From assembly GCA_020184695.1 (NCBI GenBank), contig JAANOX010000002.1, forward strand, positions 186,001 to 250,000: a stretch of DNA of 64,000 bases, given 5' to 3'. Position numbers and translations under genes: made by a program. This document shows, in pieces, positions 38 to 60,601 of the stretch (the first letter of the stretch is position 1; each line of letters begins with the position of its first letter). Source of the DNA: Histomonas meleagridis 2922-C6/04-290x. Taxonomy: Eukaryota > Protista > Parabasalia. The notes below the pieces were generated by a model. The model was not told the DNA's origin. It made no database searches and saw only the letters and a list, made by a program, of their open reading frames with translations.

Positions 38-3000
38 TCAGATTTCAAATGGGTGAAAAACGATTTCACCATTTTCTAACACTATGATGAAACAATTATT
101 TTCATCATTAAATTTCATTCCAACAATTTTACCGAATCCCACAAAAACCTTTTTAAACTGCAAATAAAATGCTTCTGCGACGAATACGTCACCTAATTCA
201 TTACTATATGCCACGTAATCTATTCCATGTTTATCTTTCCATGACATTAAATTAAAAACTTTTTCATTTATTTTTATTTTCCTTACGAACATTCCATTTA
301 TATTAAACAACTTCAAATAAATATTAAATTTATCATTTTCAAACACATTACATAAACAAATTACGAAACCAAAAGATTTTGTAATCAAAATATTATCTAA
401 AAAACAATTTTCATTATCGATGAAATAAAACGAATTATCTTTTTCAAGGTTAAAACGTATTAAGTCACCATTTTCACAACCAATTACACAACAATGGAAT
501 TCATTTGATATAGCGCTACATGTTATATCATCTCTAAAGAAGAATATATTATTAAAGCAATTATTTAAATCATTTATATCATATATATAAATGATTGATT
601 CTTTAGGATAAGTAATTACATATTTATCATTGGAAATTAACACTTTAAAATTATTAAAAATATTTTCATTAATTATTTGTTTCGAAGTTATTTGATTTTG
701 TTCATTAAATTTAAATAATTTTATTTTGTTTTCATTTGTATAAACTTTAATTTCATTTAATTCGTTATTAAAATTAACTTTAATAATTTTCTTGTTCTTA
801 ATTAACTTTAATTGTTTTTTATCAATTTTTATCTTTTTTTTGTTTTTGTTTTGTTGACAATGTTTAACTTGAAATAACATTTGAGGAATTTGTCCATTAT
901 AAATTTGTTTATGTCGAATTAATCTTCGCTCATTAATATCATTCATTCGTTCATCATTCCATACATTAAAATATAACGCGTTATCATAAACATTACGTTT
1001 TTCGATTGACTTTTGATCAACGCCAAATGTCAAATCGATCCAAAGTGGTAAATTCTTTGTTACGTAATCAGACTCAAGTGCTTTTCTCATTATATAAACA
1101 AATTCTATTGGCGAATTTGCCCATTTTGGAATTTGTTCTTTATTTATGAACTCAGGAAAACAATAAAACTCAGGAATTAATTCACTAAAGTTATATAAAT
1201 CAGTAGAAATCGAATAAAACAATTTTTCCATTGTATCGAATTTATATTTATTCTCAGTAAAATGTATTAATGAAAAAGGTTTTATATTCTTTAAATATGT
1301 ATATAATATATTAATAGGTAATAAGCCATAAGACATAAAATAACTATTCGTTGTCGAAAATTTTGTTAATTCATTATAAAATCGATCTAAAATTTTTCCT
1401 CTGTTCGGATTAATTGATCCAATGTTCTTATTAAAATCACGATAAATAGATTCATTATTTAAATCGATCTCTTTGGATGAATAATCAATTAATACCCATG
1501 GAAAGATTGGATATTGCATTGGTGAATTAAAACTTCGACCACTAAATTGATTTAATATTAATAAATAATCGAAATTCGAAATTTTCCCATTTTTCCATAA
1601 ATTTACAAAATGATTTAATTGGAATTTCTTCTTTTGATTTAAGAACTTAAAAATTTTTTTCCGAATATTTTCGGAATAAAATAATAAAAATAAAGTTTTG
1701 CCCGAATTAAATAATATTTCTAATGAAAGTTTACAATGTAAAAATGTTTTCTTACGGACAATGATTATATTTGTTATATAATAATCTTTTCGTTTATTTT
1801 GTTGTTCTTCTGATTTTAATGTTAACTTATTACTCTTTAATTGTAATATATAAGGAATTGATCCTTTCGGAGTAACTTTACAACAATGTATAATTTTATC
1901 ATCATGTTTTATATAATGAATAAATGGTTTCTCATCAGTAAAATGTATATATTTCTTTAGATATTTCGGATTCGTTCGATTCTTTGATATACTTTTTACT
2001 TTATTTTCATTATTAATGTTGATAATGTTCGATTTTTTATATTCATATTTCATTAATAAAGGCATTTGTTGATTACATAATATTGTGTCCCTAATTAAAT
2101 CATGTTTTATTTCATCGGAATAACAAATAAATCCTTTGGATGATATTGATCGATATAAATTATTCCATTTCTTATTATTTTGTTGATTAAATATTAACTT
2201 CTGTTTTGTGATCTTGTTTTGTATGTTTTCACAATTAAATGATGTATTAAATTGATATGTTTGAGGTAAACAATTAGTTAAAAATTCAATTGTTTTATCA
2301 TGTATTGGATATAATTCAGTATAAAAATCTTTGAACGATCGCGTAAACTTTTCAAATCCTTCGAAATTTTTAAAATTATTTTCTTCTTCATTAATATTTA
2401 TATTAATTTCATTTAATTTATTTATTTTTTTAATGTCATTATATAATATGATTAAATATTCATTAATATTTAAATTCATTATATCATTAATAGGAATCTT
2501 TTGTAATAAATTCATGAAAAATGTTTCATCAAATTGTAATATATAATGTAAAATTATTATTAAAAGTGTTAAACTATTTTTTTGATAAATTTTCTTCTCA
2601 ATTAATAATAAACAATATTTTTTAGCTAACTTTAAATCAATCCATTCTTTATTATTATTAATTCTTAGACCAAATTTTAATGTCATTTTAGTTAATTGTA
2701 AAGTTTTTAATTGGTTTAATATATTAATACAATTATCAGTTTCATTAAATGAAATTATATTTTGAATGTTTCTCATTTCAATGTTATTATTAAAAGGAGA
2801 ATTAATGAATTGTTCATATAAACATTCATTATAATATGGGTCAATATGAAAAAATATGAAATGTTTTAATAATGAAATATATTCATTATATTCATTTTCA
2901 GTATAATTTTCATTATTTTTTATTAAGATTTTAGTTAACATTAATAAAAATTCGGTTTTCATTTGATGAGGATTTCGATGATAAGAATTTGATACTATAT

Positions 3001-6000
3001 CCAAAAGTGAATATATTATTAACCATTGATTTTTAATTTTTAGTAAATATTTTAATATATTTTTACGTTCTATTTTAGAAGTCGAATTAATCATTTTAAT
3101 TAATATAAATAATGACCAATAACATTCTTTATATATATTATCTTGAAGTTTAAGTTCATTTATTATTTCATAGATATTATTATCATTCGTTTTCAAAAAA
3201 GTATAAAAACATAAATTATATAAATTATTATTATTACTTTCATTAATTAAATTAATGATATGTTTAAAGAATTTGGTATTAAATGATTCATTAGATATCA
3301 TTGACATTATAATATTTAAATGATTTTCTAATGATATATTAAATAAATTTCGTTTATGTAAATCTAAAACAATATCAATTGCTTTCATAATAACTTTCGA
3401 CGATTTTTTATATGTAAATAATTTATTATATAATGGAACGAGATCATTTTTCTTAGCAATTCGAGGTAAAAACTTTTGGCTATTTAATATATCACATAAT
3501 AATAAACAAATATTAATTTCAGGTACATAAAATATATAATTTAATAATAATAATAAATCATCAAATTTACAATAAATAATTCGTAAAATTTCACATATTA
3601 ATTTCATAAACTCAAATTTTATGTTTGGAATTGTTTGATAAAAGTTCATTATCTCATTTAAAAAAACTTTAAATGAAATCGTTTGATCTAATAAAAGTAA
3701 TTGTTGATAATTAGATAATATGTTTAATATATCATCTTTCCATAAATTAAAATTTAATAATATCGATTGAAACAATTGTGATTTAAGTTCAATGTTTTTA
3801 ATTATTTGAAACATTTCATAAAAATATTTATAAAGATCAAAATCTTTTTTAATGTTTTCAGTATTTAATAGAATAGTTAATATATAATTAAACCCATTAA
3901 TTCTTAAAAAATAATTTTCTGATTCATAATTTACTGAAAATATATTATTTAATATTAAAAAAACACTTTGATAATCAGTTAAAAATAATGGAATTATCGA
4001 TATTAATTGATGTGAAAATATATTAACAAAAGAATTTGTATTTTGTTCATCGAAATTTTTTATGATTTCAATGATTATATTTAAATATTTTTTATTATCA
4101 TTATATTTATATAAATATGAAATTGTATTTAATACAATTTGATTAGATGAAATCGTTTTAGTTATAAGTTTAAATAATATTATTAAACGATTATCATTTT
4201 TTTGTGTTATTCGTTCTAATAAATATTGATCTAATTTACATTTATGACAAGAAATTATATTTTCATGTGAAAATTCACATAATTTTATAATGAAATCAAT
4301 GACTTGCTCAAAAAATTCGGTGTTTTCAAAGATAACAAAAAATAAAATTAAAAAATTTTGTTGTTTTATAATAAATGTTGGCATTGTATAATTTTCGATT
4401 TCATTTCCGGATAAAATTTTCTCAATCGAATCAATCATTTCTTGAGTTGGATTAACTTTTTTACATTCATTTATTAATGTAATTATATCGAAAATAGAGA
4501 ATTTATATTGTGAAGAAAGTAATTCCAAAAATATGAAAATTCGATTAATCGAAAAATGCGCTTTTTGTAAAATCGATGAAATTATCATTTTAGAACTAAA
4601 CATATTAATAGTATCAGTATCAGTACAAATGAAATCGAGCAATTTATTATATAAAATGATAGAATCCTCATTAATTTGCTCAAAGACATTTTTAAAATAT
4701 TTAATAAAAGAAGTCGAATGAATTCTTTCTAAATATTTCTCAATGATTTTTAATACGAAATTTTGTAAATTCTCTTCGAAAAAGAATGAAAATAAACTTC
4801 TTATGAAATATTCGTTGTTAAAAAACATATATAAAATTTCATTATCTTTAAACAAATATGAAATAAAAGAAAATAATTCAATTCGAACATTTTCGACTTC
4901 TTTTTTACCTTCTAAATTTAACTTTTGATAATATAATAAAGAATTAACTATCACAGTAATAAAATCATTTGATTCTAATATAAAAGGTTTTAATTTGTCC
5001 AAATTTTTCATTATTCGTTTCGTTAAGTCAATTAATATTAATGGCGTCGAAATCGATTTCGATATTATATTAATAATTTCTTTTATACCATTTTTCATTA
5101 TGAATTTAAATGAAATTTCTCTTGCTGATTCAATACCAGAAGAAACATTTGTTACATAAGGCGAAAATATGATTTGATTAAATAACACATTCGTTAAATC
5201 GATTTTACAATTATTCATATCAATTTTAGTTATAAATATCAAAAAAACAATGTATAAATTAATAACGTTTTGATCATTCGAATGTTTTTGGATCCATTTA
5301 ATAAATATCTCAATGAAATAATCAATAAAATTCGGATTCTCATTTAATATTTCTGATATTTTATCGATTTTTTCTAATAACTCCGAGTCAATTAAAAAAT
5401 CCAAGTTTATGTTTGTTGAAGTTTTATGATATTTATTAATAATTATTTCATTATTAAATGTTTTTAATTTTTGAAATGTTTTAATCGGTTCAATTGGATA
5501 ATTAATTTGTGGATATATTATGGAATCATTTGTTATGTTTTGCGCAATAAATGGTTCCATGTTTTGTAACGCATCTGCAAATCCATTTCCAATAATTTGT
5601 ATTATAATGACTACAAAATCGGAACTCATTAATTGTATGATTTTACTTAATAAGATAATCGATGGTAAATATAAATTATAGAGATATGGAGATAAGGCGG
5701 AGCCAATGGACACTATTTCGCTTTGTGGAATTTTGTCATATGAATTACAAATGATGGTAGTAAGTGCCTCAAAAAAATTATCTGTATCTTCATATCGAAC
5801 TTCGATAAATCGCTTCATAAATAATGAAAAAACGGAATAATGCTCTTTGTTAATGTCTTTGGTGTTGATAAAAAAGGTTTGAAAAGGTTTAATGATTTTT
5901 GGTAACTCACTAAAATCTTCATATGATAAATAAAATGTTATTGAATAGATAAAGGCATCATTGACTATAGATGAATATTGAGATTGTTGAGCAAATAAAA

Positions 6001-6385
6001 GGGATTTCAAAATTATTTTTATGTACTCAACAGAACCCATCCTTTCACAATATAATATCCACGAAAGAAATGAATGCAATACTATTTGCGATATTATTTC
6101 TATTTCTTTTGGTGTACAATCTTTGATTTTGATTAAAAGTTTTAATGAATTAGGTTGAAATGCATATTTGAATTGGATAGAACTAGGAAGAGAAAAAGAA
6201 CGCGGATTTTTGGCAAAACTTGCTTTGATCGTTTCAATTTGTTTTTGTGAATAATTTGGAAATTGATTTGACTGATAAAAAGTTATTATTTCTTGCTTCT
6301 TAGTGAGCTTTTTGATATTGCTTATAGGTTTAATCTGTAAAATTGCAAGAAATGGTTCCTTTGAAAGGGCAAAAGCAAGGTTCAT
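38..6385 (-). CDS. BEACH-domain protein (PH-BEACH-WD40-like C-terminus)
   Basis: 2115-aa ORF with BEACH motifs ISNFDYLLILNQFSGRSFN, QYPIFPWVL, ELIPEFY, WIDLTFG, GQIPQMLF, followed by a beta-rich WD-like tail. Confidence 0.88.
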   Translation of the reverse strand: MNLAFALSKEPFLAILQIKPISNIKKLTKKQEIITFYQSNQFPNYSQKQIETIKASFAKNPRSFSLPSSIQFKYAFQPNSLKLLIKIKDCTPKEIEIISQIVLHSFLSWILYCERMGSVEYIKIILKSLLFAQQSQYSSIVNDAFIYSITFYLSYEDFSELPKIIKPFQTFFINTKDINKEHYSVFSLFMKRFIEVRYEDTDNFFEALTTIICNSYDKIPQSEIVSIGSALSPYLYNLYLPSIILLSKIIQLMSSDFVVIIIQIIGNGFADALQNMEPFIAQNITNDSIIYPQINYPIEPIKTFQKLKTFNNEIIINKYHKTSTNINLDFLIDSELLEKIDKISEILNENPNFIDYFIEIFIKWIQKHSNDQNVINLYIVFLIFITKIDMNNCKIDLTNVLFNQIIFSPYVTNVSSGIESAREISFKFIMKNGIKEIINIISKSISTPLILIDLTKRIMKNLDKLKPFILESNDFITVIVNSLLYYQKLNLEGKKEVENVRIELFSFISYLFKDNEILYMFFNNEYFIRSLFSFFFEENLQNFVLKIIEKYLERIHSTSFIKYFKNVFEQINEDSIILYNKLLDFICTDTDTINMFSSKMIISSILQKAHFSINRIFIFLELLSSQYKFSIFDIITLINECKKVNPTQEMIDSIEKILSGNEIENYTMPTFIIKQQNFLILFFVIFENTEFFEQVIDFIIKLCEFSHENIISCHKCKLDQYLLERITQKNDNRLIILFKLITKTISSNQIVLNTISYLYKYNDNKKYLNIIIEIIKNFDEQNTNSFVNIFSHQLISIIPLFLTDYQSVFLILNNIFSVNYESENYFLRINGFNYILTILLNTENIKKDFDLYKYFYEMFQIIKNIELKSQLFQSILLNFNLWKDDILNILSNYQQLLLLDQTISFKVFLNEIMNFYQTIPNIKFEFMKLICEILRIIYCKFDDLLLLLNYIFYVPEINICLLLCDILNSQKFLPRIAKKNDLVPLYNKLFTYKKSSKVIMKAIDIVLDLHKRNLFNISLENHLNIIMSMISNESFNTKFFKHIINLINESNNNNLYNLCFYTFLKTNDNNIYEIINELKLQDNIYKECYWSLFILIKMINSTSKIERKNILKYLLKIKNQWLIIYSLLDIVSNSYHRNPHQMKTEFLLMLTKILIKNNENYTENEYNEYISLLKHFIFFHIDPYYNECLYEQFINSPFNNNIEMRNIQNIISFNETDNCINILNQLKTLQLTKMTLKFGLRINNNKEWIDLKLAKKYCLLLIEKKIYQKNSLTLLIIILHYILQFDETFFMNLLQKIPINDIMNLNINEYLIILYNDIKKINKLNEINININEEENNFKNFEGFEKFTRSFKDFYTELYPIHDKTIEFLTNCLPQTYQFNTSFNCENIQNKITKQKLIFNQQNNKKWNNLYRSISSKGFICYSDEIKHDLIRDTILCNQQMPLLMKYEYKKSNIININNENKVKSISKNRTNPKYLKKYIHFTDEKPFIHYIKHDDKIIHCCKVTPKGSIPYILQLKSNKLTLKSEEQQNKRKDYYITNIIIVRKKTFLHCKLSLEILFNSGKTLFLLFYSENIRKKIFKFLNQKKKFQLNHFVNLWKNGKISNFDYLLILNQFSGRSFNSPMQYPIFPWVLIDYSSKEIDLNNESIYRDFNKNIGSINPNRGKILDRFYNELTKFSTTNSYFMSYGLLPINILYTYLKNIKPFSLIHFTENKYKFDTMEKLFYSISTDLYNFSELIPEFYCFPEFINKEQIPKWANSPIEFVYIMRKALESDYVTKNLPLWIDLTFGVDQKSIEKRNVYDNALYFNVWNDERMNDINERRLIRHKQIYNGQIPQMLFQVKHCQQNKNKKKIKIDKKQLKLIKNKKIIKVNFNNELNEIKVYTNENKIKLFKFNEQNQITSKQIINENIFNNFKVLISNDKYVITYPKESIIYIYDINDLNNCFNNIFFFRDDITCSAISNEFHCCVIGCENGDLIRFNLEKDNSFYFIDNENCFLDNILITKSFGFVICLCNVFENDKFNIYLKLFNINGMFVRKIKINEKVFNLMSWKDKHGIDYVAYSNELGDVFVAEAFYLQFKKVFVGFGKIVGMKFNDENNCFIIVLENGEIVFHPFEI

Positions 6386-13767: not shown

Positions 13768-13896
13768 AATTAAAAAATGATCTTATGAATACATTTTTTG
13801 GTTGAGCATTTACTAATTCAATTTAAATTCGACCATTTAAAGTATTGAAATTATAAAGTTCAAAGTTCATCGGTTTTGGCATTTTTTGGTAAAGCA

Positions 13897-15663
13897 ATGG
13901 CATGTTCCAAAATGTTTGTTGAATGCGAAATATTCGAACCTCTTCTTAGCGTACAGACCGCCCTTCAAGATTTAACTTCTTCTACGCTTGATTATTCAAT
14001 TTTTTTGATATCTGACTTCATTTCTAAACATCCAGGAAACGAACTAGATGTTATTCGTTCAATATACAAGATATCAGAGACCAAGTACCACGAAATAGAG
14101 CAATTTGTCGAACTTGTTAAACAACTTCATCTAGAAGATCTTATTTGTCGAAATTTATTTTATGGTTTTTCTCAACATGCACTTTATTTTATTCAAGCTC
14201 TTATTCATTCCGGAATTGTAAGCCAATCTATTTATGACAAAGAACTTAAGAATCCAAATAAAAATTATCCAGAAATTTACAATCAAAAATTTCACCAAAA
14301 GGATGATTCCCATATAACACAAGTTTTATCTTCAATTATTGACAAAGATGATTCTGATTCACTTCAAGAATATTTATCATCGCCATCAATCTCTATTAAC
14401 TATGAATTTCCATCTATGCCACATCTAAACAATGTCACAAGTCCAATCAAATGGCAAGTAAGTCTTATAAATTATTCTGCATATCGTGGCATGTCAAAAT
14501 GCTTTAAATTTCTTTTACTTAATGGGGCCAAACTTATCACCGATGGCACCTTAACGTCAATGACATATGCAGTTTATGGCGGTAATCTCGAAATCATACA
14601 TATTCTCGAATCGCAAATTAAGATTCATCCCGAAGATATTTGTGGTGCAATTTATAACCATCACAGAGAAGTATTTGACTGGATAATAACTAATTTAGAT
14701 TGCGATGGAATAAGTAAAAAAATTGTTAACGTCTGTCTCCAAAGTGATTTTCTTTATGGACTTACGAAAGTTCAAACAGAAGTTTCGATTGATGAAATAT
14801 TTTATTCACTTGTAAAGCAAAATAACATTGAGTTTATGAAAGTACTTCTTAAAAATCATGGAAATGAAATCACACATATTCGAACTGTTAAAGGTTACAA
14901 CACAAAAATGAGCACTGTTTGTTATAGTGGGAACGTTGATATGTTTAAACTTTTATATGAACATTATTCAGATCAAATCGATATCGACTTAATTTTCGAC
15001 TCCGTAATTAAATCGCAAAATCTCGATTTTATAAAGTATTTTGTTAATGAGTTCCATCCTAATATGTCAGCAAAAGGAACTCAAGGTTATACTCCTATAT
15101 TAAGGGCATGTGAATTAAATGATTTTGATATCTTTGAGTATCTTTCTCAACAAAATGGTGTTGATTATACAATCACGAATGATTATGGTATGAATTGTCT
15201 TTTTTTGTGTTGTAAAAATGGTAACTTTGAGATTTTTAAGAAATTAATGGAAATTCCAAGTATTGATATTAATAAAGAAACATGTGATGGCTTTACTGAA
15301 ATAAATCCTTTGGGATGTGCAATGGAGAACAATAGAATAGAATTTGTAAAAATAATTTTAAATGATCCAAGAATAATCCCTAATATAAGAACTTGGTATA
15401 ATGCACAACATTTTAATTTTAAAAATAGTCATTTTGCAATTGCTTTACGATGTGAATCGCAAGAAATAATGGAATTGTTATTAAAACATCCTAAAATGAA
15501 AATAACTTTGGATGAAAAGAATATGGTGTTAAAAAGTTATCCGAAAATATCAAAAGAAATCATAGATAATGTAAAAATTCGAAATGTCGATAATTATGAC
15601 TTATTGGATTATTGTTATAATGAGGAAGAAGGTCCTCCTTTAATAGATATGGAAAACGAATAA
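13897..15663 (+). CDS. DUF3447-like/ankyrin repeat protein, uninterrupted
   Basis: SLINYSAYRGMSKCFKFLLLNGA...AVYGGNLEIIHIL followed by contiguous ankyrin repeats; first ATG at 13897 (ORF track begins at TTG 13876). Confidence 0.85.
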   Translation: MACSKMFVECEIFEPLLSVQTALQDLTSSTLDYSIFLISDFISKHPGNELDVIRSIYKISETKYHEIEQFVELVKQLHLEDLICRNLFYGFSQHALYFIQALIHSGIVSQSIYDKELKNPNKNYPEIYNQKFHQKDDSHITQVLSSIIDKDDSDSLQEYLSSPSISINYEFPSMPHLNNVTSPIKWQVSLINYSAYRGMSKCFKFLLLNGAKLITDGTLTSMTYAVYGGNLEIIHILESQIKIHPEDICGAIYNHHREVFDWIITNLDCDGISKKIVNVCLQSDFLYGLTKVQTEVSIDEIFYSLVKQNNIEFMKVLLKNHGNEITHIRTVKGYNTKMSTVCYSGNVDMFKLLYEHYSDQIDIDLIFDSVIKSQNLDFIKYFVNEFHPNMSAKGTQGYTPILRACELNDFDIFEYLSQQNGVDYTITNDYGMNCLFLCCKNGNFEIFKKLMEIPSIDINKETCDGFTEINPLGCAMENNRIEFVKIILNDPRIIPNIRTWYNAQHFNFKNSHFAIALRCESQEIMELLLKHPKMKITLDEKNMVLKSYPKISKEIIDNVKIRNVDNYDLLDYCYNEEEGPPLIDMENE

Positions 15664-16268
15664 TTGTAAATTTTAACATTCGTTTGATTTTTGTTTTTAT
15701 AATAAAATTATTTTGTTTTTATTAAATTTTATCTTTAGTATAAATACTTGAAATTTGATGTTAGGAATTGAAATAATTAGAAATTATGTGTATAAGCTTT
15801 TTTCGTAGATAAACTTTTAATTAAATTTATAAAATTATTTCGTTTATTATGTATTGGTATATATACATTCTTTAGATAATTAGAAACCATCATGTTTTTA
15901 TAATAAAGTGGTTTTTTTATTATGATTCATTTAAATACTTTATCATGATATTGATGTTATATCCCAAATTATTATTTTCTTTTATATATATATATATATA
16001 TATATGAATTGATTTTATGTTTAATTAAATTAATCTCATCTATTTAAAATTAAATCAAGTTTACAAAAAACTAATTTAAATAATTTCTTCTAACAAGATT
16101 TCGCTTAAGAGCAAACAATTTTATTTTCAAAAGATTATCTCCATTATCAAGCATATACCCAAACACAATTTTCAAAATTTAGAATATATATAGTTCATGA
16201 AAGATTTTAATTTATTATCAATAGTTTAGTTTAATTATTTGTGTACAATATTAAATTCTATATTCATT

Positions 16269-18228
16269 TTATTTATTAATTTTTTGATTATCTGCTATAG
16301 CAGATTCAATATTAAATCTTTTTAATAAATTTCAAAAATTATTATGAAACATCAAATTATTGTAACAATTTTTATATATAACAAATAAATATCTATTGAA
16401 GTGGCATCAATTCCTTCATGCTCAAGAAGTAGTTTTACTATATCTCTGTGATCATAGAATGCTGCTTTCATAAGTGCTGTATAAAATTGTATAAATAATT
16501 TCCAAATATTATATTTAAATAAAAAATCATTAAAACAAATTTTATATAAAATAAACAAACATCTTTAGCATTGACATCAATTTCTTTTTGTTTAAGAAGT
16601 AATTTTACAATTTCTGTGTTACCTTTATAAGATGCATAAAATAATGCGTTCCAAAATATATTACACAATTTCCAAACATTAAATAAAAATTTTTAATTAT
16701 TTCAAAAAACTTTAATTAAAATAAAAAAATATCAACATCATTGATATTAATTTCCTTATTATCAAGAAGCAATTTAACTATATCTATATTTTTTTCATAA
16801 GATGCCATCATGAGTGCTGTTTTAAATAATTTAAATGATTTCCAAATATTATTTTTAAATAGAAAATTTCAAAAATAAATTCTAAATAAAACAAAGAAAT
16901 ATTTTTAGCATTAACATCAATTCCTCCTTGTTTAAGAAGTAATTTAACTATTTCTTTATGGCTATTTTCAGATGCACTCATAAGTGCTGTTCTAAATTTT
17001 GTGAATAATTTCCAAACATCATTTAAAAATATTATAAAATCGTAAAAATAAACATCAAATAAAACAAATAAAAATCTTTAGAATTAATATCAACTCCATC
17101 TTGCTTCAAAACATATTTAACAAGTTCAATATTTCCTGATTCTGAGGCAAAAACGATTATGTTTGTTGGGATTTGATTATATTCAAGAAAGTGTCTTGTT
17201 AGAAACAAATTTCCAATTTTTGCTGTTTCATTTATAACAAATTTATCAATTTTCATTCCTTCTTCTTCCAAAAACAAAAGAATTTCATAATTACTATTAT
17301 TGACACAAAAATAAAACAAATTTTCGTTTAATTTCTCTAATTTATTTTCATAAATGTATTTAAAGATATCATTTTGATGAAACTTAATTGCAGTTTCATA
17401 TGCGCTTTTGAAAGATGAATGATTTTGTTCACAAAAATGAATTATCTCTAAATTTCCACCTGCAATTGCATATTTGCCTGCATTAAATGTATTTGCTCCA
17501 TTCATAAGTAAATATTTAAAACATTTAACTGATCCAAAAAATGCTGCATATTTAATTAAAGAGATAACTTTCTGATTAATGAATGAACATCTTTCATAAA
17601 GTGATGGTTTTATTGTTTGATTAAAATCAAAATCACTTTGTGATGATATTTCTTGAAGTTTTTCGATTTCATCATTTCGAATTATTTTTGCAATTTCATT
17701 TGGATTATGTCCTTCTTTAACATATTTCTTATGTAGTTCCCAATCATTCTTTTTCAAATCTTCATAGTTTTTGATAAAATAATTGTAAAATAGATTGTTG
17801 GAATACTTATCTTTGTTTTCTTCTTTTGTATCATAATGTACAAAATATAATAATTTAAAATTTTCGATAATATTTATATCAATTAAATTATTTTCAAGCA
17901 TTTTATTAATGATATAATATGTTTCTTGTGTATTAATTTTACGTATATAATCTAAAAATATTTCAATGATTTTTGGATAATTTTTATCGAGTTCTTCTTC
18001 TTTTGTTTGAATTATTTTCAAATAATCCAAATATATATTATCTATATTCTTTTGTGAGTAAAACACACAGTATATCAAACTACTTAGTAGAAGATTAAAT
18101 GAATATGGATAATTTGAATCAAATAATTTCATGGTTTGCTGAATTGAAGAATCAAAATATTCCTCCTTTAAATTAAATATAACGTGATAAAGTGTCTTAA
18201 GTATATCCATGTAATTTGATTGAAACAT
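16269..18228 (-). CDS. DUF3447-like/ankyrin gene A, spacer-interrupted (5 cores, 5 spacers, short terminal segment)
   Basis: N-terminal ORF 18228-17032; ankyrin cores start at 17163, 16990, 16820, 16650, 16480; terminal IESAIADNQKINK* from 16310; spacers 83, 80, 80, 80, 80 nt. Confidence 0.7.
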
Positions 18229-20482: not shown

Positions 20483-21286
20483 TTAAATTGTCACTTTTCT
20501 TGTCGGCCGTTTAAAGTTATGATCCTCAAAAAAGATTGCAGGAGCAAAAGGAATGGATGTGTTTGTTCGAATCTTCCAGCGTTCTTTGATTAATCCCACC
20601 GAACTAGAATCCAAAGCATCATTCATTTCTTTGGAATAATAAAAGTCATCTGAAGTAAATGAAACATTTCCAAAAATTTCAGGAGAATGTTCTATGAGAA
20701 TTGTGACAACTTTGTTTTGCATTGGGCTTTCGAGCAATATTGTTTGTTTATCTGCTATTTCGGATGCAAGAATATTTGGAGCAATACAAATTGCAAGATT
20801 TCCATATGTCATTTTGTTAACTTCAGAGTTTTCCCCAATTTCATGAAGGAAGTCCATTAGATATGCAAGCGTTTTGTAGCGACTTGGTGATAAATCTAAA
20901 CATATTTTTTTGATTCGTTCAAGGACAATTTCTTGATCTGGAATGTTACCGACAGCAACAATAAGGTCATAAAGTTCATATGTCATCAATGGATCTTTCT
21001 TTGCGATTTCTCTTAGATAACTTTTTAATGCGCAAGCAACTTCGATTTGGTTATAACAAGACCAATCTTTTACATGCAAAGTATCAATTTCATTCAATAA
21101 TCTGCTAATATTAACTGATGAACCACTTAATCGAAAGATACCGGGAACATTTTTTGCATCAAGTTCTCTTAACCTTTCAATCAGGAGTTTCATTACATAT
21201 GGAATCTTATCTCCATATTCATTAAAAGTCATTTGTAAATAATGTGGTCTTTCTTGCTTTTCTGCTTTTTCTTGTCCTGCTTTCAT
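20483..21286 (-). CDS. RhoGAP domain protein
   Basis: IPYVMKLLIE, GIFRLSGS, ACALKSYLREI, NKMTYGNLAICIAPNIL. Confidence 0.92.
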   Translation of the reverse strand: MKAGQEKAEKQERPHYLQMTFNEYGDKIPYVMKLLIERLRELDAKNVPGIFRLSGSSVNISRLLNEIDTLHVKDWSCYNQIEVACALKSYLREIAKKDPLMTYELYDLIVAVGNIPDQEIVLERIKKICLDLSPSRYKTLAYLMDFLHEIGENSEVNKMTYGNLAICIAPNILASEIADKQTILLESPMQNKVVTILIEHSPEIFGNVSFTSDDFYYSKEMNDALDSSSVGLIKERWKIRTNTSIPFAPAIFFEDHNFKRPTRKVTI

Positions 21287-21334
21287 TCGAATGGTTCAAT
21301 TTTAAAAACGGTTTTTTACCGTCAAATATCAAAA
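21287..21334. promoter_or_regulatory. 48-bp bidirectional promoter with M3-like motifs
   Basis: Divergent ATGs at 21286 (-) and 21335 (+); AACGGTTT at 21307-21314 matches trichomonad M3 (RRCGGTTK); inverted ACGGT/ACCGT pair. Confidence 0.55.
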
Positions 21335-24300
21335 ATGGAAAATTCTCCAAAAAAGAATGTTAATCAAAAAAGCAAAGAACATTTAAATATATTAATACAG
21401 TTTGAACAAATTATTTTAAGTTTGGTAAACGAAAATATTGAAAAATCTGCTCAATCAATGATCAATTTATTTAATAATAAGTATCAATATTCATATAAAA
21501 ATATTATTTGTAGACTTATTTATTCTTCTTTTGTTTCAAGGTTAAAAGATTTTAATATTTATTTTGATTTCATGAAGTTAATTGAACAAAAATGTAAAAG
21601 TTCAGATGAAAATAAAATTATAAATTTATTTATAAAATATATTCTTAAGAAAAATTCACAAGAATCATATTATCTTTTAGCGCAAATAGCTGAATCTAAT
21701 TTAATTGATCCTGAAATCATTAAAAATAAATCTTTACATTTTGCTCATTACAATAAAAAATTTTTCATCTTGGAATTTTTTGAATTTTATAATGATTTTA
21801 TGGATAACCTTGAAAAGCTTAAAAAGGATAATTGGAAATTTCACAAACAATTATTAAAAGAAGGAGTGAATCCAAATGAAATAGCAAAAATAATTCGAAA
21901 TGATGAAATCGAAAAATTTCAAGAAATATCATCACAACCAAAATTTGAGTTTAATCAAACAATAAAACCATCGCTTTATGAAAGGAGTTCTTTTATTAAC
22001 AATGATATTGTTACATTAATTGATTATGCAGCATTTTTTGGGTCAATCAAATGTTTTAAATATTTATTATTAAATGATGTAGATGTAGAAAATGCAGGTA
22101 AATATGCAATTGCAGGCGGAAATCTTGAGATAATTCATTTATGTGAACAAAATCATTCATCATTTGAAGATGCATATGAAACTGCAATTAAATATCATCG
22201 AAATGATATCTTTAAATATCTTTATGAAGACTTATGTTTGAAATGCGATGATTTAATTGATTTGGCAGAAAAATGTATTTTATATGATTCATATAAAATT
22301 TTATCATATTTAGAAGAAAAAGAACTAAAAATTAATAGTTCAATAATTTATTCTTTAGTAGGAAATGGAAATTTAATGCTCACTAAACATTATATTAAAA
22401 CAAATCAATTTCCTGAAAATATCGTAATCTCAGCAGTAAAATCTAGAAATATTGATCTTGTTAAATATTTTATTGATAAAAAAGGTTTTGATATTAATGC
22501 ACGTGATTTTCTTTTCTTATGTTTTTTGTTTAATTCGAGAATTTTATGAAATTTTTTTTAATTATTTCAAACACCACTTATTACTGCTACTAAAGATGGT
22601 AATGTTCAACTTGTTAAATTTCTTCTTGATAAAAAAGAAATAAAAATTAATATGAAAGAAATTTATTTATCTTGTTTAAAATATGTTATTAATATTTCAT
22701 GTTTCAAAATGTGATTTGGATTTTAATAAAACTATTTAATTCTGCTCTTATATATGCAGTTGAAAATGGAAATATTGAAATTGTTAATTTGTTTCTTCAA
22801 CAAAAAGAAATTGATGTGAATTTGAAAGGTATTAATTTATATTATTTAGAGACTATTTTTAATGTTTGGTATTTCTTATTGAATTTTGAAATTTCTTTCA
22901 TATAAATTGTAATGCTCTTATTATTGCATCAGAAAATAATCATGTTGAAATTGTTAAGATACTTCTTGGAAAAGAAGGAATTAAAGTTAACTCTAAATCT
23001 GTATCTAGAATTAATTTTATTTTTATTTTGATATTTTTCTGTTAAATAAAAATATTTGGATTTTACAAGAAACATTTGAAACAGCACTTATGAATGCATC
23101 TAAAAATGGTCAAAAAGAGATAGTTAAATTACTTCTTGAACAAAAAGGAATTGATATTAATGCTAAAAATAAAGTTTATGTTAATAATTTGATGTTTGCA
23201 AATTATATTTGGAAATTATTTAAATTATTTAATACAGCACTTATGATGTCATTTAATGAAGGTAATAATGAAATAGTAAAATTACTTCTTGAACAAAAAG
23301 GAATTGATATTAATGCTAAAAATAAAGTTTATTTTAATAATTTGATGTTTGAAATTTATATTTGGAAATTATTCTGTATATTTAATACAATACTTATGGA
23401 AGCATCTTCAAATGGTTATACAGAAATAGGAAAATTGCTTCTTGAACAAGAAGAAATTGATATTAATGCTCAAGATATTTATTTTTTTTGTTTGATATTT
23501 TTCTTAAATTTTTAATGTTTCATGATAATATTTGGAAATTATTTAAATTATTGCAAACAGCACTTATGAAAGCATCTTCGAATGGTCATGTGGATATAGT
23601 TAAATTACTTCTTGAACAAAAAGGAATTGATATTAATGCTAAAAATAAAGTTTATTTTAATAATTTGATGTTTGCAAATTATATTTGGAAATTATTTAAA
23701 TTATTTAATACAGCACTTATGATGTCATTTAATGAAGGTAATATTGAAATAGTAAAATTACTTCTTGAACAAAAAGGAATTGATATTAATGCTAAAAATA
23801 AAGTTTATTTTAATAATTTGATGTTTGAAATTTATATTTGGAAATTATTCTGTATATTTAATACAGTACTTATTTATGCATCTCAAAAAGGTCATATAGA
23901 AATAGTTAAATTGCTTCTTGAACAAGAAGAAATTGACATTAATGCTAAAGATAAAATAAATTTAAATAATTTTATATTTCAAAATAATATTTGGAAATAA
24001 TTTAAAATATTTTGGACAGCACTTACTTGGGCATCTAAAAATGGTCATACAGAAATAGTAAAATTACTTCTTGAACAAGAAGGAATTGATATTAATGCTA
24101 AAGATATTTATTTGTTTTATTTAAAATTTATTTTCATAATTTATTATTTCAAAATAATATTTGGAAATTATTTAAATTATTTGAAACAGCACTTATGTGG
24201 GCATCTTCGAATGGTCATGTGGATATAGTTAAATTACTTCTTATACAAGAAGGAATTGATATTAATACAAGTAATGTTTATATATTTTATTTAATGTTTC

Positions 24301-24949
24301 TTAAAATAATTTGATATTTTTCAATAATTTTTGGGAAAAACATAAAATATTTTATACAGCGCTTATGTTTGCAGCCAACTATAGTCACACAGAGGTAATT
24401 AAATTACTTCTTGAACAAAAAGATATTGATATTAATGCCAGAGATATTTGATTGTTTTATTTAAATTTTATTTTCATAATTTAATGTTTTAAATCAATAT
24501 TTGGAGATTATTAAAAATATTTAGCACAGCACTAATTTGGGCATCTAAAAATCGTAATATAGAAATAATCAAGTTACTTCTAGAAAAAGAGGGAATCAAT
24601 ATTAATATACAAGGTTTTTGTTTTCTTTATTTATTGTTTATTTTATAAATTTAATGTTTTTCTATAATTTTTGGAAAAAATTTAATATATTTAATACAGC
24701 ACTTATTTATGCTGTTAAAAATGGCAATACAAAAATAGTTAAATTACTTCTTGAACAAAAAGGAATTAATTTAAATGCTAAAGATATTTATTTGTTATAT
24801 TCAAGGTTTATCATAAAACTTTATTAATGTTTGGTATTTATGTTTAGAATTCATGAAAATTATTTGAAACAGCATTAGGTCATGCATGTCAAGCCGGTTT
24901 CGAGAAAATATCGAAATTAATTCGTGATAAAATTGATACATATGGATAA
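21335..24949 (+). CDS. DUF3447-like/ankyrin gene B, spacer-interrupted (15 cores, 15 spacers, C-cap repeat)
   Basis: N-terminal ORF to 22549; cores at 22418, 22571, 22741, 22911, 23081, 23234, 23387, 23557, 23710, 23863, 24016, 24186, 24356, 24526, 24696; terminal TALGHACQAGFEKISKLIRDKIDTYG* from 24869. Confidence 0.75.
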
Positions 24950-25330
24950 AAAGTAAACATTAAAATTTAAATTTTTTTTTAAGCAATATATAAATTTATT
25001 ACATATATATATACCTAATTAATTATGAAAACAATCAGTTTTTAAAGTAATTATTCAAATCTAATCATAAAGAAATTCATAAAATTTTTAGTTTCTTAAT
25101 CAAATTTTACAGAACAAACTATTTCTTAAAATTTTTTTATTTTCAAAGTTTTATTCTCTGTAACTATTTTAATAAATTGTACTTATCAAAAAAAGGAAAT
25201 ATTTTTATTTTCTTCATATCAAAAATCTGAATATCAAACAACTGATTTTTTATTCACCCATTCAAATTTTGATTCAGGCATTGAAAAAATTGAATTCTTT
25301 ACGATGATCCAGAATTCAGCAATTTTTTAG

Positions 25331-31319: not shown

Positions 31320-32140
31320 GCGTCAGCTAAAAAAGTATTGGAATTATTCGATTCAAATTGTTCACATTTAATATTATTACAAGTTACTTAGTTTATAATG
31401 CATTTTCATCACGAAAGCAAGAATTTGATATATACTTTGATATTTTAAAAACAACTCCAAACGAAAGAAGAAGAAATTAATCAAAATATTGTTAAACTAA
31501 TATCAATTTTTATCAAATGTATATCTACAATGAACGCACAAAATTCATATTATTTAATTGAGAAAACGATTGAACAAAATTTAATTGATAAAAATATCAC
31601 TAAAAATATTCATTCAAAATATTTCTCTCATTATAAAACAGAAGAAGAAAACAAATACCAAACTCATATGGAACTTGGGTTTAATGGAAATGAGGATATG
31701 CTCAAAAAGAATGATTGGGAGCTTCATAAGAAGGACATAATCCAAATGAAAATACAAAAATAATTAAAAATGATGAAATCGAAAAACTTCAAGAAATATC
31801 ATCACAAAATGATTTTTATTTTAATCAAACAATAAAACCATCACTTTACGAAAGATATTCATTTATTAACCAAAGGAATGTTACATTAATTGATTATGCA
31901 GCATTTTTTTCTTCAGTTAAATGTTCTAAATATTTACTTATGAATGGTGCAAATGGATTTAATGCAAGTAAATATGCAGTTGCAGGTGGAAATGAAGAAA
32001 TTATTCGATATTGATCGTGTTTTTTCTGATTTATTCTCATAAAGATATTTAAAGATATCATTTTGATGAAATTTAATTGCTGTTTTATATGCATCTTTAA
32101 ATGATGAATAATTTTGTTCACACAAATGAATGATTTGATA
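31320..32140 (+). pseudogene. Decayed DUF3447/ankyrin family copy with inverted 3' piece
   Basis: Plus strand: frameshifted ...NDEIEKLQEISSQ...DYAAFFSSVKC...AGGNEEII; the continuation IIHLCEQNYSSFKDAYKTAIKFHQNDIFKYLYENK lies on the minus strand at about 32135-32022. Confidence 0.8.
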
Positions 32141-37479: not shown

Positions 37480-38413
37480 AAAATTTTAAGTTTTGATTTT
37501 TTTCACACTCTGAATTCCATTCAAATATTGAATACATGGAGATTTTACGATAGGTTTAGATCGCTTTTATTTGTGTGCGAAGAGTTAACTCTTTAAGTGT
37601 GTATTCGCTTATTAATATTATATTTTTAATCGTTAAATATGATGTCATTCGTTTTGAAAATAAATTTGGTGATTTTTTCAAAATTAATTTTTGTTGATAT
37701 AATCGAAAAATCAAAAACTCGACATGTTAACTTTATCCATTTATAGGAATTGTTGATATATCTTCGTAAAGTACATTCAAGATAATAATAATTTATGTCG
37801 TAAGCTGTTCGATATGAAGTGATTTTTACAACAAGTTTCGAAATGCTCCATGAACAAAGTTCATATAAATACTGTATAATGGCATTTACTACAGTAATAA
37901 GTTTGTTGTATGGTTTCATTGATGAAGAAAAAGAATATGAATTTAGTCAAATTTTTTGTCAGTATCACAAAAAGTCATATTTTGAAACTTTATTTCAGAA
38001 AAAACTACCTATTTAAATGCGGCATTTTTTTCTTGGAACATGCAAAATGATAAAAAACTTCATATTTTCACATCCAATAAATGAACAAATTCGTGAACAA
38101 CTTTTTTTGATTATTCGCACTAAATCTTTATGTATATATACAATATCAATTCCTTTTAGTTCATAAGCGTAAACATTTAACTGAAGAAAAATTGGTACAT
38201 AATTAATTAAATAGACATTTTTCTGATTAACAAATGAGCATCTTTTATACAGTGCTGGTATTATTGTTTGATTAAAATCAAAATTTCTGATTTTTTTTTT
38301 TTTGAGAAGATAATTGATTTAAAGACCTTTATTTAAATAAATATGAATTAGTGATAAACATCTTCTTTATTCATCAAAAAAAGGGTGGGGCAGAACTTTT
38401 TGCATCCTATAGT

Positions 38414-41047
38414 TCACGCAATAACACACGTGTTCCTTTTCTGACGAATTAAACTCACTATTTCTGTATGACCATTTTCAGATGCTTTCATAAGTGCTGT
38501 TCTAAATAATTCAAATAACTTCCAAATATTATTTTGAAATTTCAAATTATTAAAATAAATTTTAAATAAAATAAATAAATATCTTTAGCATCAATATCAA
38601 TTCCTTTTTGTTCAAGAAGTAATTTAACTATTTCTGTATGACCATATCGAGATGCCCATATAAGTGCTGTATTAAATATTTTAAATAGTTTCCAAATATT
38701 ATTTTGAAATTTCAAATTATTAAAATTAATTTTAAATAAAACAAATAAATATCCTTAGCATTAATATCAATTCCTTCTTGTTCAAGAAGTAATTTAACTA
38801 TTTCTGTACGACCATTTGAAGATGCTTTCATAAGTGCTGTTTGAAATAATTTAAATAATTTCCAAATATTATTTTGAAATATAAAATTTTTAAAATAAAT
38901 TTCACTTTTAGCATTAATATCAATTCCTTCTTGTTCTAGAAGTAATTTAACTATTTCTGTACGACCATTTGAAGATGCCAAAATAAGTGCTGTTACAAAT
39001 AATTTAAATAATTTCCAAATATTATTTTGAAATATAAAATTTTTAAAATAAATTTCACTTTTAGCATTAATATCAATTCCTTCTTGTTCTAGAAGCAATT
39101 TAACTATTTCTGTACGACCATTTGAAGATGCTTTCATAAGTGCTGTTTGAAATAATTTAAATAATTTCCAAATATTATTTTGAAATATAAAATTTTTAAA
39201 ATAAATTTCATTTTTAGCATTAATATCAATTCCTTCTTGTTCTAGAAGTAATTTAACTATTTCTGTACGACCATTTGAAGATGCCAAAATAAGTGCTGTA
39301 TCAAATAATTTAAATAATTTCCAAATATTATTTTGAAATAATAAATTATTAAAATAAATTCTTAATAAAACAAATAAATATCTTTATCATTAATATTTAT
39401 TCCTTTTTGTTCAAGAAGTAATTTAACTATTTCTATATGACCATTTTCAGATGCTCTAATAAGTGCTGTTTCAAATAATATATATAATTTCCAAATATTA
39501 TTTTGAAATAAGAAATTATTAAAACAAATATTAAATAAAATAAATAAATATTTTTGGCATTTATTTCAATTCCCTCTTGTTCTAGAAGCAATTTAACAAT
39601 TTCTGTGTGGCCACCAAAAGATGCAAACATAAATGTTGTAAAAAATAATTTAAATAATTTTCCTTTTATATTTTAAAACATAAAAATAATAAAATAATTA
39701 TTTTGTAAAACATGTAAATATTTTTTCCATTAATATCAATTCCTTCTTGTTTAAGCAGTAGTTTAACTACTTCTAAATTATGTTCAATAGAAGCAATCAT
39801 AAGTGCTGTATTAAATATTTTGCGTAATTTCCAAATCTATTTTTGAAATAATAAATTGTTAAAATAAGCTTTTTATAAAATATAAAAATATTTTTTGCAT
39901 TGATATTGATTCCGTTTTGTTCCAAAACATATTTAATAAGTTCAATATTACCTGATTCTGTACTAAAAATTAATATATTTTGTGGAATTTTTATATTTCG
40001 AAGAAAATGCTTAGTAAGATATAAGTTTCCAATCTTTGCTGTTTCATTAATAATATTGTTATTAATTGCCATTCCTTCTTCTAATAAAAATGCGAAAATT
40101 TCATAAGCAAAAAACTTCATACATTTTTCCCCTAAGAATTTTAAAGTATTAATTTCTTCAATTTTATTTTCATAAATATAATGAAAAATTTGGTTTTTAT
40201 GGAATTTAATTGCTGTTTCATATGCGCCAACAAATGATGAATGATTTTGTTCACATAAATGAATAATTTCTACATTTCCACCTGCAATTGCATATTTACC
40301 TGTATTTTCTACTTTTGCGCCATTCATAAGTAAATATTTAAAACATTTGATTGAAGAAAAAAATGCTGCATAATCAATTAATGAAACATTTCCTGTATTA
40401 ATAAATGAACATCTTTCATAAAGTGATGGTTTAATTCTTTGATTAAAATTAAAATTATTTTGTGATGATATTTCTTGAAATTTTTCGATTTCATCATTTC
40501 GAATTATTTTCGCAATATCATTTGGATTATGTCCTTCTTTAATTAATTGTTTGTGAACTTCAAAATTATTCCTTGAGAGTTCTTCATAATTCTTAAGAAA
40601 AGTATAACATAAGTGATCTTTTTTTATTCTTGTTTTGTTTTCTTTTTCTGTTTTATAGTGTGCAAAAAATTTTGACTGAATATTTTTAGTGATATTTTTA
40701 TGTAACAGATTCTTTTCAATCATTTCCTCAATAAGATAATAAGCCTCTTGTGATTTAATTTCAGAAATATAGGTTTGAAAAAAATCAATGATGTAATTAA
40801 TATTTTTGTTCTTTTCTTCTTCAGCTTGAATTGCTTGTAAATAATTTATATAAATAGAACTTTCTTTATTTTGTGAAATAAATGCAAAGTAAACTAAATT
40901 ACATATAATAAAATTAAATGAATACGAAAAATTGGAATCAAATAATTTCATAGTTTGATGAACTGACCATACAATATTTTCCTTAGTTAAATTAAATATT
41001 AATTGTTCAATTGAGACAAGTATCTTCAAATTATTTTCATCATCCAT
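38414..41047 (-). CDS. DUF3447-like/ankyrin gene C, spacer-interrupted (9 cores, 9 spacers, C-cap repeat)
   Basis: ATG at 41047; cores at 39979, 39809, 39639, 39469, 39299, 39146, 38993, 38840, 38670; terminal TALMKASENGHTEIVSLIRQKRNTCVIA* from 38500. Confidence 0.75.
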
Positions 41048-41399
41048 AATATGATTGACACTTTTATATGAACGCAAAAAGTTCTAATTGAGATAAAATT
41101 AGCAAATGCCCACAAGAAAAATGGGGCACTCCATACCAAACTCGCCTTAAAATTAAAAATGGTTGCATGATTTTTTTTAGAAATATCATTTTTCTAAAGG
41201 GCCGTTGCAATTCAGAATATGCCATCCTTTACATCCAAGTTCTGTTTATGGGGTTCTTCGCCAAAAATAAGCGTCGTTGAAAATTTGAAAGTACTCATTC
41301 AAAATATTGTTTGATTTACTTGTGCGACAGAAAAAAACAATAAACACTTTGTAAAAATAATGAACATTTAACCAAAAAAAAGACTTTTATGAAGTGAAA

Positions 41400-59981: not shown

Positions 59982-60601
59982 ACAACATGAATTGTCAATT
60001 TTTTGTTTATTCTCTGTAGGATGACTTTATTTGATATCCAAACTTTTTCTCAGCTTCATTAAACCTATTTAGAAATCGCATGTTAGTGTATTAACAATTA
60101 GAATTTTAATTTATTGAATTAGCTCATAAATTGCGTATTGTGTTGGTATTTGCTTTTGATCTTTAAATACTCTATTGATTTCATTCGCATAATTATGTTA
60201 CTATAGTAGAATATGTTTTGGGAAAGTTTTTCAGTGTTGTACCAAACAGCGAATATTATTTTGCAATTTCAAATTTTTGATATAACTCTTAAAGATTTTC
60301 ATTAATGCTCTGAATTGGTGTACGCGAAGTCATTTTGAAAGTGTTATTGTTTGTTCTAATAATATTAATCAAGCCACTTGAAGATTTTGATGTTGTTTTG
60401 TGACTTGTTTATAATAAGTAATACAGCAAAATCGTGAAAACTTGTGAATTATTATTCTATTACATGCAATCGCAGAAAACCTTCTTAATGATTATGTTTA
60501 ACAGCATTAGAATTTATTACTAAATGTGAAAGGTTATACCCAATAAAAACATTTTAAAATAAATATTATGTGTTTATTATTCTGTTCGATGATTACTGTT
60601 C

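Follow-up and report, generated by a model that had tools for sequence, protein, structure and literature searches.

The window analysed here is a stretch of 64,000 nucleotides (nt) of the genome of the poultry parasite Histomonas meleagridis (contig JAANOX010000002.1, positions 186,001 to 250,000), with a GC content of 29.5%. It contains four genes, A to D, in which ankyrin repeats alternate with spacers, and the present study deals mainly with gene B (Table 1). The ankyrins of the window are of the trichomonad DUF3447 type. In the N-terminal part of gene B, Pfam places DUF3447 at residues 256-322 (1.3e-09) and finds Ank there as well, and Ank is found at 1.8e-20 in the read-through open reading frame (ORF) 23090-23512 of the array. 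Core detection by anchoring on the most conserved codons (IVKLLLEQ) gave 16 ankyrin cores of 30 codons each between 22418 and 24958, separated by 15 AT-rich spacers, and the anchors follow each other at periods of only 153, 170 or 173 nt. The data point to spacers that are built of several separate inserts of 17 nt with single codons between them, and to a transcript from which the inserts are probably removed while the codons are kept.

It had been noticed earlier, from the sequence alone, that 30-codon cores alternate with AT-rich spacers in gene B, and this original prediction took the spacers for elements that are removed or skipped by a non-canonical mechanism. As a description of the array it has held up well. 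Nine of the 15 spacers are not a multiple of three in length, and stops interrupt both relevant frames in those at 24276-24355 and 24446-24525. The cores are divergent from one another (mean identity 74%, minimum 61%), yet their 450 codons contain 0 stops and 0 frameshifts; each of 2000 shuffled versions of the core sequence had at least one in-frame stop. Some units of gene B are recent duplicates (476-nt period, 87% identity), and the ratio of nonsynonymous to synonymous substitution rates (dN/dS) among the cores is about 0.8. It could be argued from the duplicates, and from a dN/dS that is no lower than this, that we are looking at decaying pseudogenes whose regularity was inherited from recent duplication. 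However, the divergent units 1-4 hold the exact geometry, the cores are free of stops, gene B is transcribed and processed, and the geometry is held in metagenome relatives at 70-80% DNA identity. Decay is hardly credible as an explanation.

The spacers of gene B come in three lengths only, 63 nt (six spacers), 80 nt (eight) and 83 nt (one), and the 80-nt type is the 63-nt type with exactly 17 nt added at its 5' end. The same arithmetic applies to the 15 spacers of gene B and to 16 spacers of genes A, C and D: 63 = 3x17+12, 80 = 4x17+12 and 83 = 4x17+15. The inserts were placed by a position weight matrix (PWM) parse, which splits the spacers into alternating 17-mers and triplets. A parsed spacer consists of three or four inserts of 17 nt and single kept codons which read x-x-Gly-x, the canonical ankyrin loop, and GGN stands at the position of the loop glycine in 26 of the 31 parsed spacers of genes A-D. 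The roughly four loop residues that had been thought missing would be supplied by these single kept codons. In agreement with this, the alignment of the Ank profile with the read-through ORF starts no earlier than profile position 3, and the missing 'D-G' corresponds to kept codons 2 and 3. It had also been claimed that the interruption always follows the D/N codon; this stands with the reservation that in spacers of 63 nt a further codon precedes the first interruption. Removal of 54 inserts (918 nt) from 21335-24949 leaves a single ORF of 898 codons with 15 repeats of 34 residues and a C-terminal cap, and this spliced model predicts loop-spanning peptides such as ...INAKNKDGNTALM....

Variability along the spacers follows the same division. 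In 28 aligned spacers the kept triplets (offset 17 of 20) have the highest column entropy, and all four of them form a peak. At the 17|3 borders the entropy jumps from about 0.2 to 1.9 bits, and the Gly triplet is nearly invariant. The inner boundaries of the inserts are inferred from three things, namely the 17-nt difference between the spacer types, the position of the Gly codon and this pattern of variability. The parse is not equally firm everywhere. The best parse of spacer 1 has two directly adjacent 17-mers, and the alternative split C-I-C-I-C-I-C is possible there; the split of spacer 15 is the least certain of all and its loop has no Gly.

The question whether the inserts are present in RNA was addressed with assembled contigs from four RNA-labelled runs (X1-X4) of one study, which were aligned to 21200-25100. 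DNA was represented by the 2021 runs, two samples with two runs each, and the DNA shares given here come from runs X6 and X7. The 31-mers of gene B reach a share of 0.39-0.51 in the RNA runs, where the ceiling for an insert-free form is 0.585, and the 31-mers of the array reach 0.87-0.88 in the DNA runs, where the insert-free ceiling is 0.41. Every RNA run has a contig that matches gene B with 0 mismatches in the pieces 22199-22510, 22568-22661 and 22738-22831, to which 22908-23000 is added in X4. At spacer 1 (X1-X4) the contigs have 6 letters between the end of one piece at 22510 and the restart at 22568, and 51 nt (3x17) are missing. At spacer 2 there are 8 letters between 22661 and 22738, with 68 nt (4x17) missing, and at spacer 3 (X1, X2, X4) again 8 letters between 22831 and 22908, with 68 nt missing. 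The numbers 6, 8 and 8 are those predicted by the model, including chance extensions of 1 nt at 22661 and 22831. The RNA form of each of these spacers is therefore 12 nt long, as against 63, 80 and 80 nt in the genome, and the position of the outer boundaries is uncertain by 0-1 nt only. The 6-8 letters at each joint fit neither flanking genomic side, which means that every such spacer is cut more than once.

These contigs bear on two parts of the original prediction. That the interrupting DNA goes by a non-canonical route is supported, since it has no spliceosomal signals, is absent from the RNA contigs and is present in the DNA runs. That the whole spacer is the unit removed had to be given up, as the RNA contigs keep 12 nt of each of spacers 1-3. 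Further along gene B, the match of the X4 contig ends at 23000, which is the end of core 4, and another X4 contig matches with 0 mismatches only at 24523-24614. It begins with the kept codon that closes spacer 13, breaks off within 1 nt of where core 14 ends, and diverges from the genomic sequence to either side. Loose contig ends, among them those at 23174 and 23799, and letters between contig pieces continue as x-x-GGA-x-ACA-GCA-CTT, a four-codon loop, and come mostly from paralogue transcripts, which read ...KD-x-x-GGA-x-TAL without interruption. RNA contig depth is 0 in the intergenic region 24999-25100, so the RNA libraries are not simply DNA. The RNA runs do include low-depth contigs with a retained spacer (e.g. 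24100-24196), and these carry 7-13 mismatches, which identifies them as paralogues, either as pre-mRNA or as contaminating DNA.

Table 1. Features of gene B and of the related genes A, C and D, with inserts and kept codons as modelled (positions in the window; shortened end positions share the leading digits of the start)
Feature	Positions	Strand	Inserts	Kept codons or loop	Remarks
Gene B (DUF3447/ankyrin)	21335-24949	+	54 of 17 nt removed		Mature coding sequence 2697 nt (898 codons + stop); no internal stop
First exon, uninterrupted	21335-22510	+		First kept codon at its end	N-terminal DUF3447 domain and core 1; RNA contigs 21366-21898, 21920-22038, 22199-22510, gapless, 0 mismatches
Spacer 1 (63 nt)	22508-22570	+	22511-22527, 22528-22544, 22551-22567	TTT, TAT-GAA, CAA	
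Spacer 2 (80 nt)	22661-22740	+	22661-77, 22681-97, 22701-17, 22721-37	AAA, CAT, GGA, AAT (K-H-G-N)	
Spacer 3 (80 nt)	22831-22910	+	22831-47, 22851-67, 22871-87, 22891-907	AGA, GGT, GAA, TGT	
Spacer 4 (80 nt)	23001-23080	+	23001-17, 23021-37, 23041-57, 23061-77	Y-S-G-E	
Spacers 5-10	23171-24015	+		KDGN (x4), DNGQ, KYGW	PWM parse
Spacer 5 (63 nt)		+	23174-90, 23194-210, 23214-30		
Spacer 6 (63 nt)		+	23327-43, 23347-63, 23367-83		
Spacer 7 (80 nt)		+	23477-93, 23497-513, 23517-33, 23537-53		
Spacer 8 (63 nt)		+	23650-66, 23670-86, 23690-706		
Spacer 9 (63 nt)		+	23803-19, 23823-39, 23843-59		
Spacer 10 (63 nt)		+	23956-72, 23976-92, 23996-24012		
Spacers 11-14 (80 nt each)	24106-24695	+		KIGE, NDGY, KNGS, INGN	PWM parse
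Spacer 11		+	24106-22, 24126-42, 24146-62, 24166-82		
Spacer 12		+	24276-92, 24296-312, 24316-32, 24336-52		
Spacer 13		+	24446-62, 24466-82, 24486-502, 24506-22		
Spacer 14		+	24616-32, 24636-52, 24656-72, 24676-92		
Spacer 15 (83 nt)	24786-24868	+	24786-802, 24806-22, 24829-45, 24849-65	Five kept codons	Precedes C-terminal cap
C-terminal capping repeat	24869-24949	+			ORF ends at TAA 24947-24949
Gene A	16200-18228	-	16 parsed		Four parsed spacers (83, 80, 80, 80 nt)
Gene C	38411-41077	-	33		Nine spacers (80 nt x6, 63 nt x3); spliced model is one ORF of 700 residues
Gene D (partly modelled, N-terminal part excepted)	60596-61161	-	7		Two spacers (63, 80 nt); C-terminal cap at end

The RNA contigs can also be read with a different partition of the spacers, for example with two larger introns (34+17 or 34+34 nt) around a micro-exon of 6-9 nt in each spacer. 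The contigs show only the count of the letters between the pieces (6 or 8), and the two adjacent 17-mers in the best parse of spacer 1 are effectively 34 nt. Against such a partition, exactly one 17-mer separates the 63-nt from the 80-nt type, the lengths of 43, 66 and 100 nt among metagenome spacers are set apart by 17 and/or 3, and the entropy peaks are seen at all four triplets. In addition, paralogue transcripts go on ...AAA-G|AT-GGA..., which gives K-D-G as in the single-codon parse and not F-G, and one contig has lost 3x17 nt and yet retains insert 4. We regard larger introns as improbable.

Three further explanations touch on the level at which the inserts are lost. The source of the transcripts could be DNA free of inserts (retro-copies, or a form processed somatically), with the insert-bearing loci remaining unprocessed at the RNA level. 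The share of the DNA words, which is 0.87-0.88 and not 1.0, leaves some room for this; the low-depth unspliced paralogue contigs in the RNA runs speak against it if they are pre-mRNA, but they may equally be DNA carry-over. A spliced contig is, however, 100% identical to the gene B locus over about 590 nt, and the insert-bearing copies are under selection, with stop-free cores, exact insert length at 65% spacer identity, stop-free kept codons and a conserved Gly. This explanation is more improbable still than the different partition. The inserts also differ from germline-limited DNA of the type of the internal eliminated sequences of ciliates in that they are found in the DNA runs (0.87-0.88) and in metagenome DNA contigs. 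Handling at the level of translation, by ribosomal bypass or by coupled mini-ORFs of single repeats with overlapping stop and start codons, would leave the inserts in the mRNA. Five of the six 63-nt spacers are indeed stop-free in frame, and gene callers read through the metagenome units, but the 80-nt spacers contain stops and throw the reading out of frame, and the exact RNA contigs lack the 51, 68 and 68 nt at spacers 1-3. We give it next to no weight, and the ribosomal bypass that had been suggested earlier is not needed, as the RNA no longer contains the inserts. Taken together, we infer that excision occurs at the RNA level, and gene B is most likely expressed as one DUF3447/ankyrin gene of 898 codons.

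All 110 modelled inserts of genes A-D are 17 nt long and lie at phase 0, and they consist of 59% T, 33% A, 5% G and 3% C with the consensus R-T-T-T-a...A-T-T-T (R-U-U-U-a...A-U-U-U in RNA). In 32 of 95 distinct inserts the boundaries have no sliding freedom. The ends in the modelled register are mostly AT..TT (36), AA..TT (20), GT..TT (18) and TT..TT (6), and a single canonical pair (GT..AG, GC..AG or AT..AC) was found among the 95 distinct inserts over all allowed registers. These ends do not agree with the 5' GT (GTAYGT) and 3' AG of the U2-type introns of trichomonads. In line with the original prediction, CTAAC is absent from the 15 spacers of gene B, several of them (seven) have no AG, and ACAG is missing in front of four cores. 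The trichomonad branch motif ACTAACACACAG (ACTAAC near the 3' end) does not occur anywhere in the window even if one mismatch is allowed. U12-type introns have AT...AC ends, a 5' ATATCC and the branch site TCCTTAAC; in the modelled register none of the inserts has AC at its 3' end, and C+G amounts to 8%. A whole spacer as one GT-AG or otherwise canonical intron was considered and rejected, as no register gives back the frame together with canonical ends.

In the predicted RNA structures of the 15 spacers with their flanks no common or unusually stable fold was seen; the folds are inconsistent, with a mean z of -0.5 relative to shuffles. The bulge-helix-bulge fold of tRNA-type introns is not seen, as the spacer folds disagree and the inserts are almost pure A/U. 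Nor do the twin stem-loops with CNGNNGN loops of the IRE1 type (HAC1/XBP1) form in inserts with 5% G and 3% C. In length, on the other hand, the inserts fall into the class of ultra-short introns (15-17 nt). They could be tiny spliceosomal introns of an extreme kind, similar to those of Stentor and Mikrocytos, which the normal spliceosome cuts at non-canonical ends. Such a proposal is about mechanism alone and falls, as a special case, within the reading preferred here, so that its odds are not to be added to those of the other explanations. Spliceosomal introns in the narrow range of 15-17 nt do exist (PMC10245619), and Trichomonas vaginalis has T-rich introns of 23-25 nt (PMC12316389). Against it stand the single canonical end pair, the absence of both branch motifs and a downstream exon of just 3 nt; we put it somewhat short of an even chance.

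Another question is how an insert would be told from similar DNA that stays. Two lookalike 17-mers in the N-terminal exon of gene B, 21400-21416 and 21624-21640 (+), have PWM scores of 9.5 and 11.4, to be compared with a median of 10.1 for the true inserts, and both are kept in the RNA contigs. On the sense strand, 29 lookalikes were counted in 35 kb of uninterrupted ORFs. The ORF at 38-6385 (-), with 2115 codons and 17-22% GC, has 15 sense-strand lookalikes and is uninterrupted. That the motif is sufficient for removal was rejected on account of lookalikes with PWM scores of 8-15 in uninterrupted ORFs and the exon stretches retained in RNA. Since lookalikes are kept in RNA, motif and length are not the whole signal. 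A PWM scan of the window, non-ankyrin genes included, gave no frame-restoring 17-nt insert outside the four arrays. At 13876-15663 (+) there is an uninterrupted DUF3447/ankyrin ORF of 595 residues whose repeats are encoded contiguously, so the inserts are not present in every ankyrin gene of the window.

The recurrence of the design in three other genes had been claimed and was confirmed on the minus strand at 16391-17163 (gene A), 38411-39979 (gene C) and 60596-61005 (gene D). In gene A a fifth spacer before the C-terminal cap, with about four further inserts, was seen by eye. A segment at 31723-32001 (+) has 72% DNA identity to the DUF3447 N-terminal region of the metagenome contig L001 and suggests a further family member or fragment outside genes A-D. 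Outside the ankyrin family, a tandem repeat of 30 and 60 nt was observed at 50077-50264 within the ORF 49405-50877 (-).

A protein search with the read-through ORF 23090-23512 found about 40 ENA metagenome proteins with about 55-64% identity. These represent the same 51-residue unit translated straight through, gene callers having read through the 63-nt spacers. Ten relative contigs (L002-L011) were taken from ENA assemblies, which follow three naming schemes. The contigs are colinear with the arrays of the window at 70-80% DNA identity, and homologues of their flanking genes were not found within the window. The contigs may come from a second species or may represent further family members of the same species. 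Their spacers are 43, 63, 66, 80, 83 or 100 nt long, all of the form 17n+3m, in 23 of 25 distinct cases. The 43-nt spacer (L004:446-488) is parsed into two inserts and three kept codons (K-G-I); compared with the 63-nt type it is short of one insert and one codon. Each of the four insert positions has its own consensus, and for every class the window and the metagenome contigs agree, so the four-insert module predates the divergence of these sequences. It had been proposed that the element was amplified along with the repeat unit, and the position-specific classes, common to all units, genes and metagenome relatives, bear this out. A search with 22100-22507 gave a single metagenome paralogue, P0001, whose contig L001 stops before the array. 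At L001:526-1411 this N-terminal domain paralogue is split over frames (ORFs 526-723, 805-972 and 935-1411); the breaks are likely to be frameshifts or assembly errors and are not recognisable as 17-nt inserts.

Between the window and the metagenome contigs the conservation is 0.50 in kept codons, the lowest class, 0.78 in inserts and 0.74 at third codon positions. Selection on the interiors of the inserts was considered and rejected, for once composition is allowed for their conservation is no higher than that of third codon positions. This resemblance suggests that substitutions in the interior are nearly neutral, while length and ends are held.

Our data indicate, with a probability of roughly 80%, that each spacer of gene B consists of several separate 17-nt pieces and kept codons rather than of a single element, and that the pieces are fixed-length mini-introns excised from RNA. 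The ankyrin loop would be written codon by codon, with three or four U-rich inserts alternating with the kept codons x-x-Gly-x. The inserts would be transcribed and then cut individually from the RNA, which would make them intron-like and would rebuild canonical repeats of 34 residues. As GT-AG or AT-AC ends, a branch site and a fold are absent and the motif is insufficient, an excision-ligation activity that measures length and also reads context is favoured. Whether the machinery is a very derived mode of the spliceosome or a separate endonuclease-ligase pathway stands at roughly even odds. The four-insert module would be ancestral to the repeat family and would spread by duplication of repeats; now and then a single 17-nt piece would be lost or gained exactly, which would give the 63-nt and 80-nt types. 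Going further, Histomonas-like parabasalids, possibly more than one species, may have a new RNA-processing pathway, non-spliceosomal, length-measuring and context-guided, that excises 17-nt U-rich pieces and ligates exons down to one codon. This wider proposal is tentative, and the chances are slightly against it.

Several observations weigh against the interpretation given here. The RNA data are assembled contigs labelled 'RNA?' and not raw reads. The contigs give only letter counts between the pieces, so the inner cuts of gene B are deduced and not read from RNA. Units 5-15 are swamped by paralogue contigs. One class of X1 contigs with a depth of about 4300 has a joint 24105->24162 with five letters between, by which 51 nt (3x17) are lost and the fourth insert (24166-24182) is kept; it fits modular removal and may be an intermediate or a paralogue. 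The loops of spacers 1, 3 and 15 are atypical, and the lookalikes in the N-terminal exon are retained in RNA. Finally, two of the 25 metagenome spacers, of 62 nt (L005:1919-1980) and 81 nt (L010:1083-1163), do not fit the arithmetic; these may be low-coverage assembly errors, pseudogenes or cases of misplaced core ends.

In the searchable literature no description was found of 17-nt introns outside Mikrocytos, of Histomonas splicing or of tandem single-codon exons. The published genome description reports introns as scarce, no gene having more than one, and is silent on ankyrins (PMC8529796); with such gene models the large ankyrin family of this poultry parasite is likely to be truncated or mistranslated at present. 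If the reading proposed here is true, it has to be asked how a 17-nt U-rich piece is recognised while identical-looking neighbours in exons stay, whether spliceosomes can work without canonical signals or another nuclear cut-and-join system acts on mRNA, and how such elements arise and get lost with single-nucleotide precision.

Among known systems the closest in size are the ultra-short spliceosomal introns of Mikrocytos mackini (16-17 nt), heterotrich ciliates (15-16 nt) and the chlorarachniophyte nucleomorph (18-21 nt) (PMC10245619). The inserts resemble them in a length of about 17 nt, in the narrow size range and in being present in DNA but not in mRNA. However, the ultra-short introns have conserved intron sequences and lie singly in ordinary exons, whereas the inserts have RT/AA...TT ends and no branch motif, stand in tandem at a pitch of 20 nt with 3-nt exons, and are so far confined to ankyrin arrays, mostly to the repeat loops. 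The type B introns of T. vaginalis are spliceosomal, T-rich and 23-25 nt long, with a CTAA branch-site element near the 3' end, and 24 of them are present in the genome (PMC12316389). They share with the inserts the phylum, the T-rich interior and the very short length, but the inserts have none of those signals and number 110 in four genes of the window. Micro-exons of 3 nt are known in animals and plants (PMC8042270, PMC8831610). Like the kept codons, they are single-codon exons that are precisely joined. Animal and plant micro-exons are flanked by ordinary and much longer GT-AG introns; here, in contrast, up to four single-codon exons follow each other 17 nt apart.

Nuclear pre-mRNA introns without GT-AG ends are also known. 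The non-conventional introns of euglenids are of variable length and their ends pair, and the non-canonical introns of Fritillaria have ends of the AG-AC or AG-AT type. The inserts are like both in lacking GT-AG, and differ in the fixed length of 17 nt, the U-rich ends and the absence of visible pairing. Bypass elements such as that of T4 gene 60 and the mitochondrial 'byps' of Magnusiomyces are short non-coding inserts in ORFs that are kept in the mRNA and absent from the protein. The inserts are likewise short and lie within ORFs, but they are missing already from the RNA-derived contigs. The combination of non-canonical ends, a fixed length of 17 nt and tandem 3-nt exons is present in none of the compared systems, and if excision is confirmed on raw reads, the inserts would be intron-like elements that belong to none of the classes described, with exons down to single codons.

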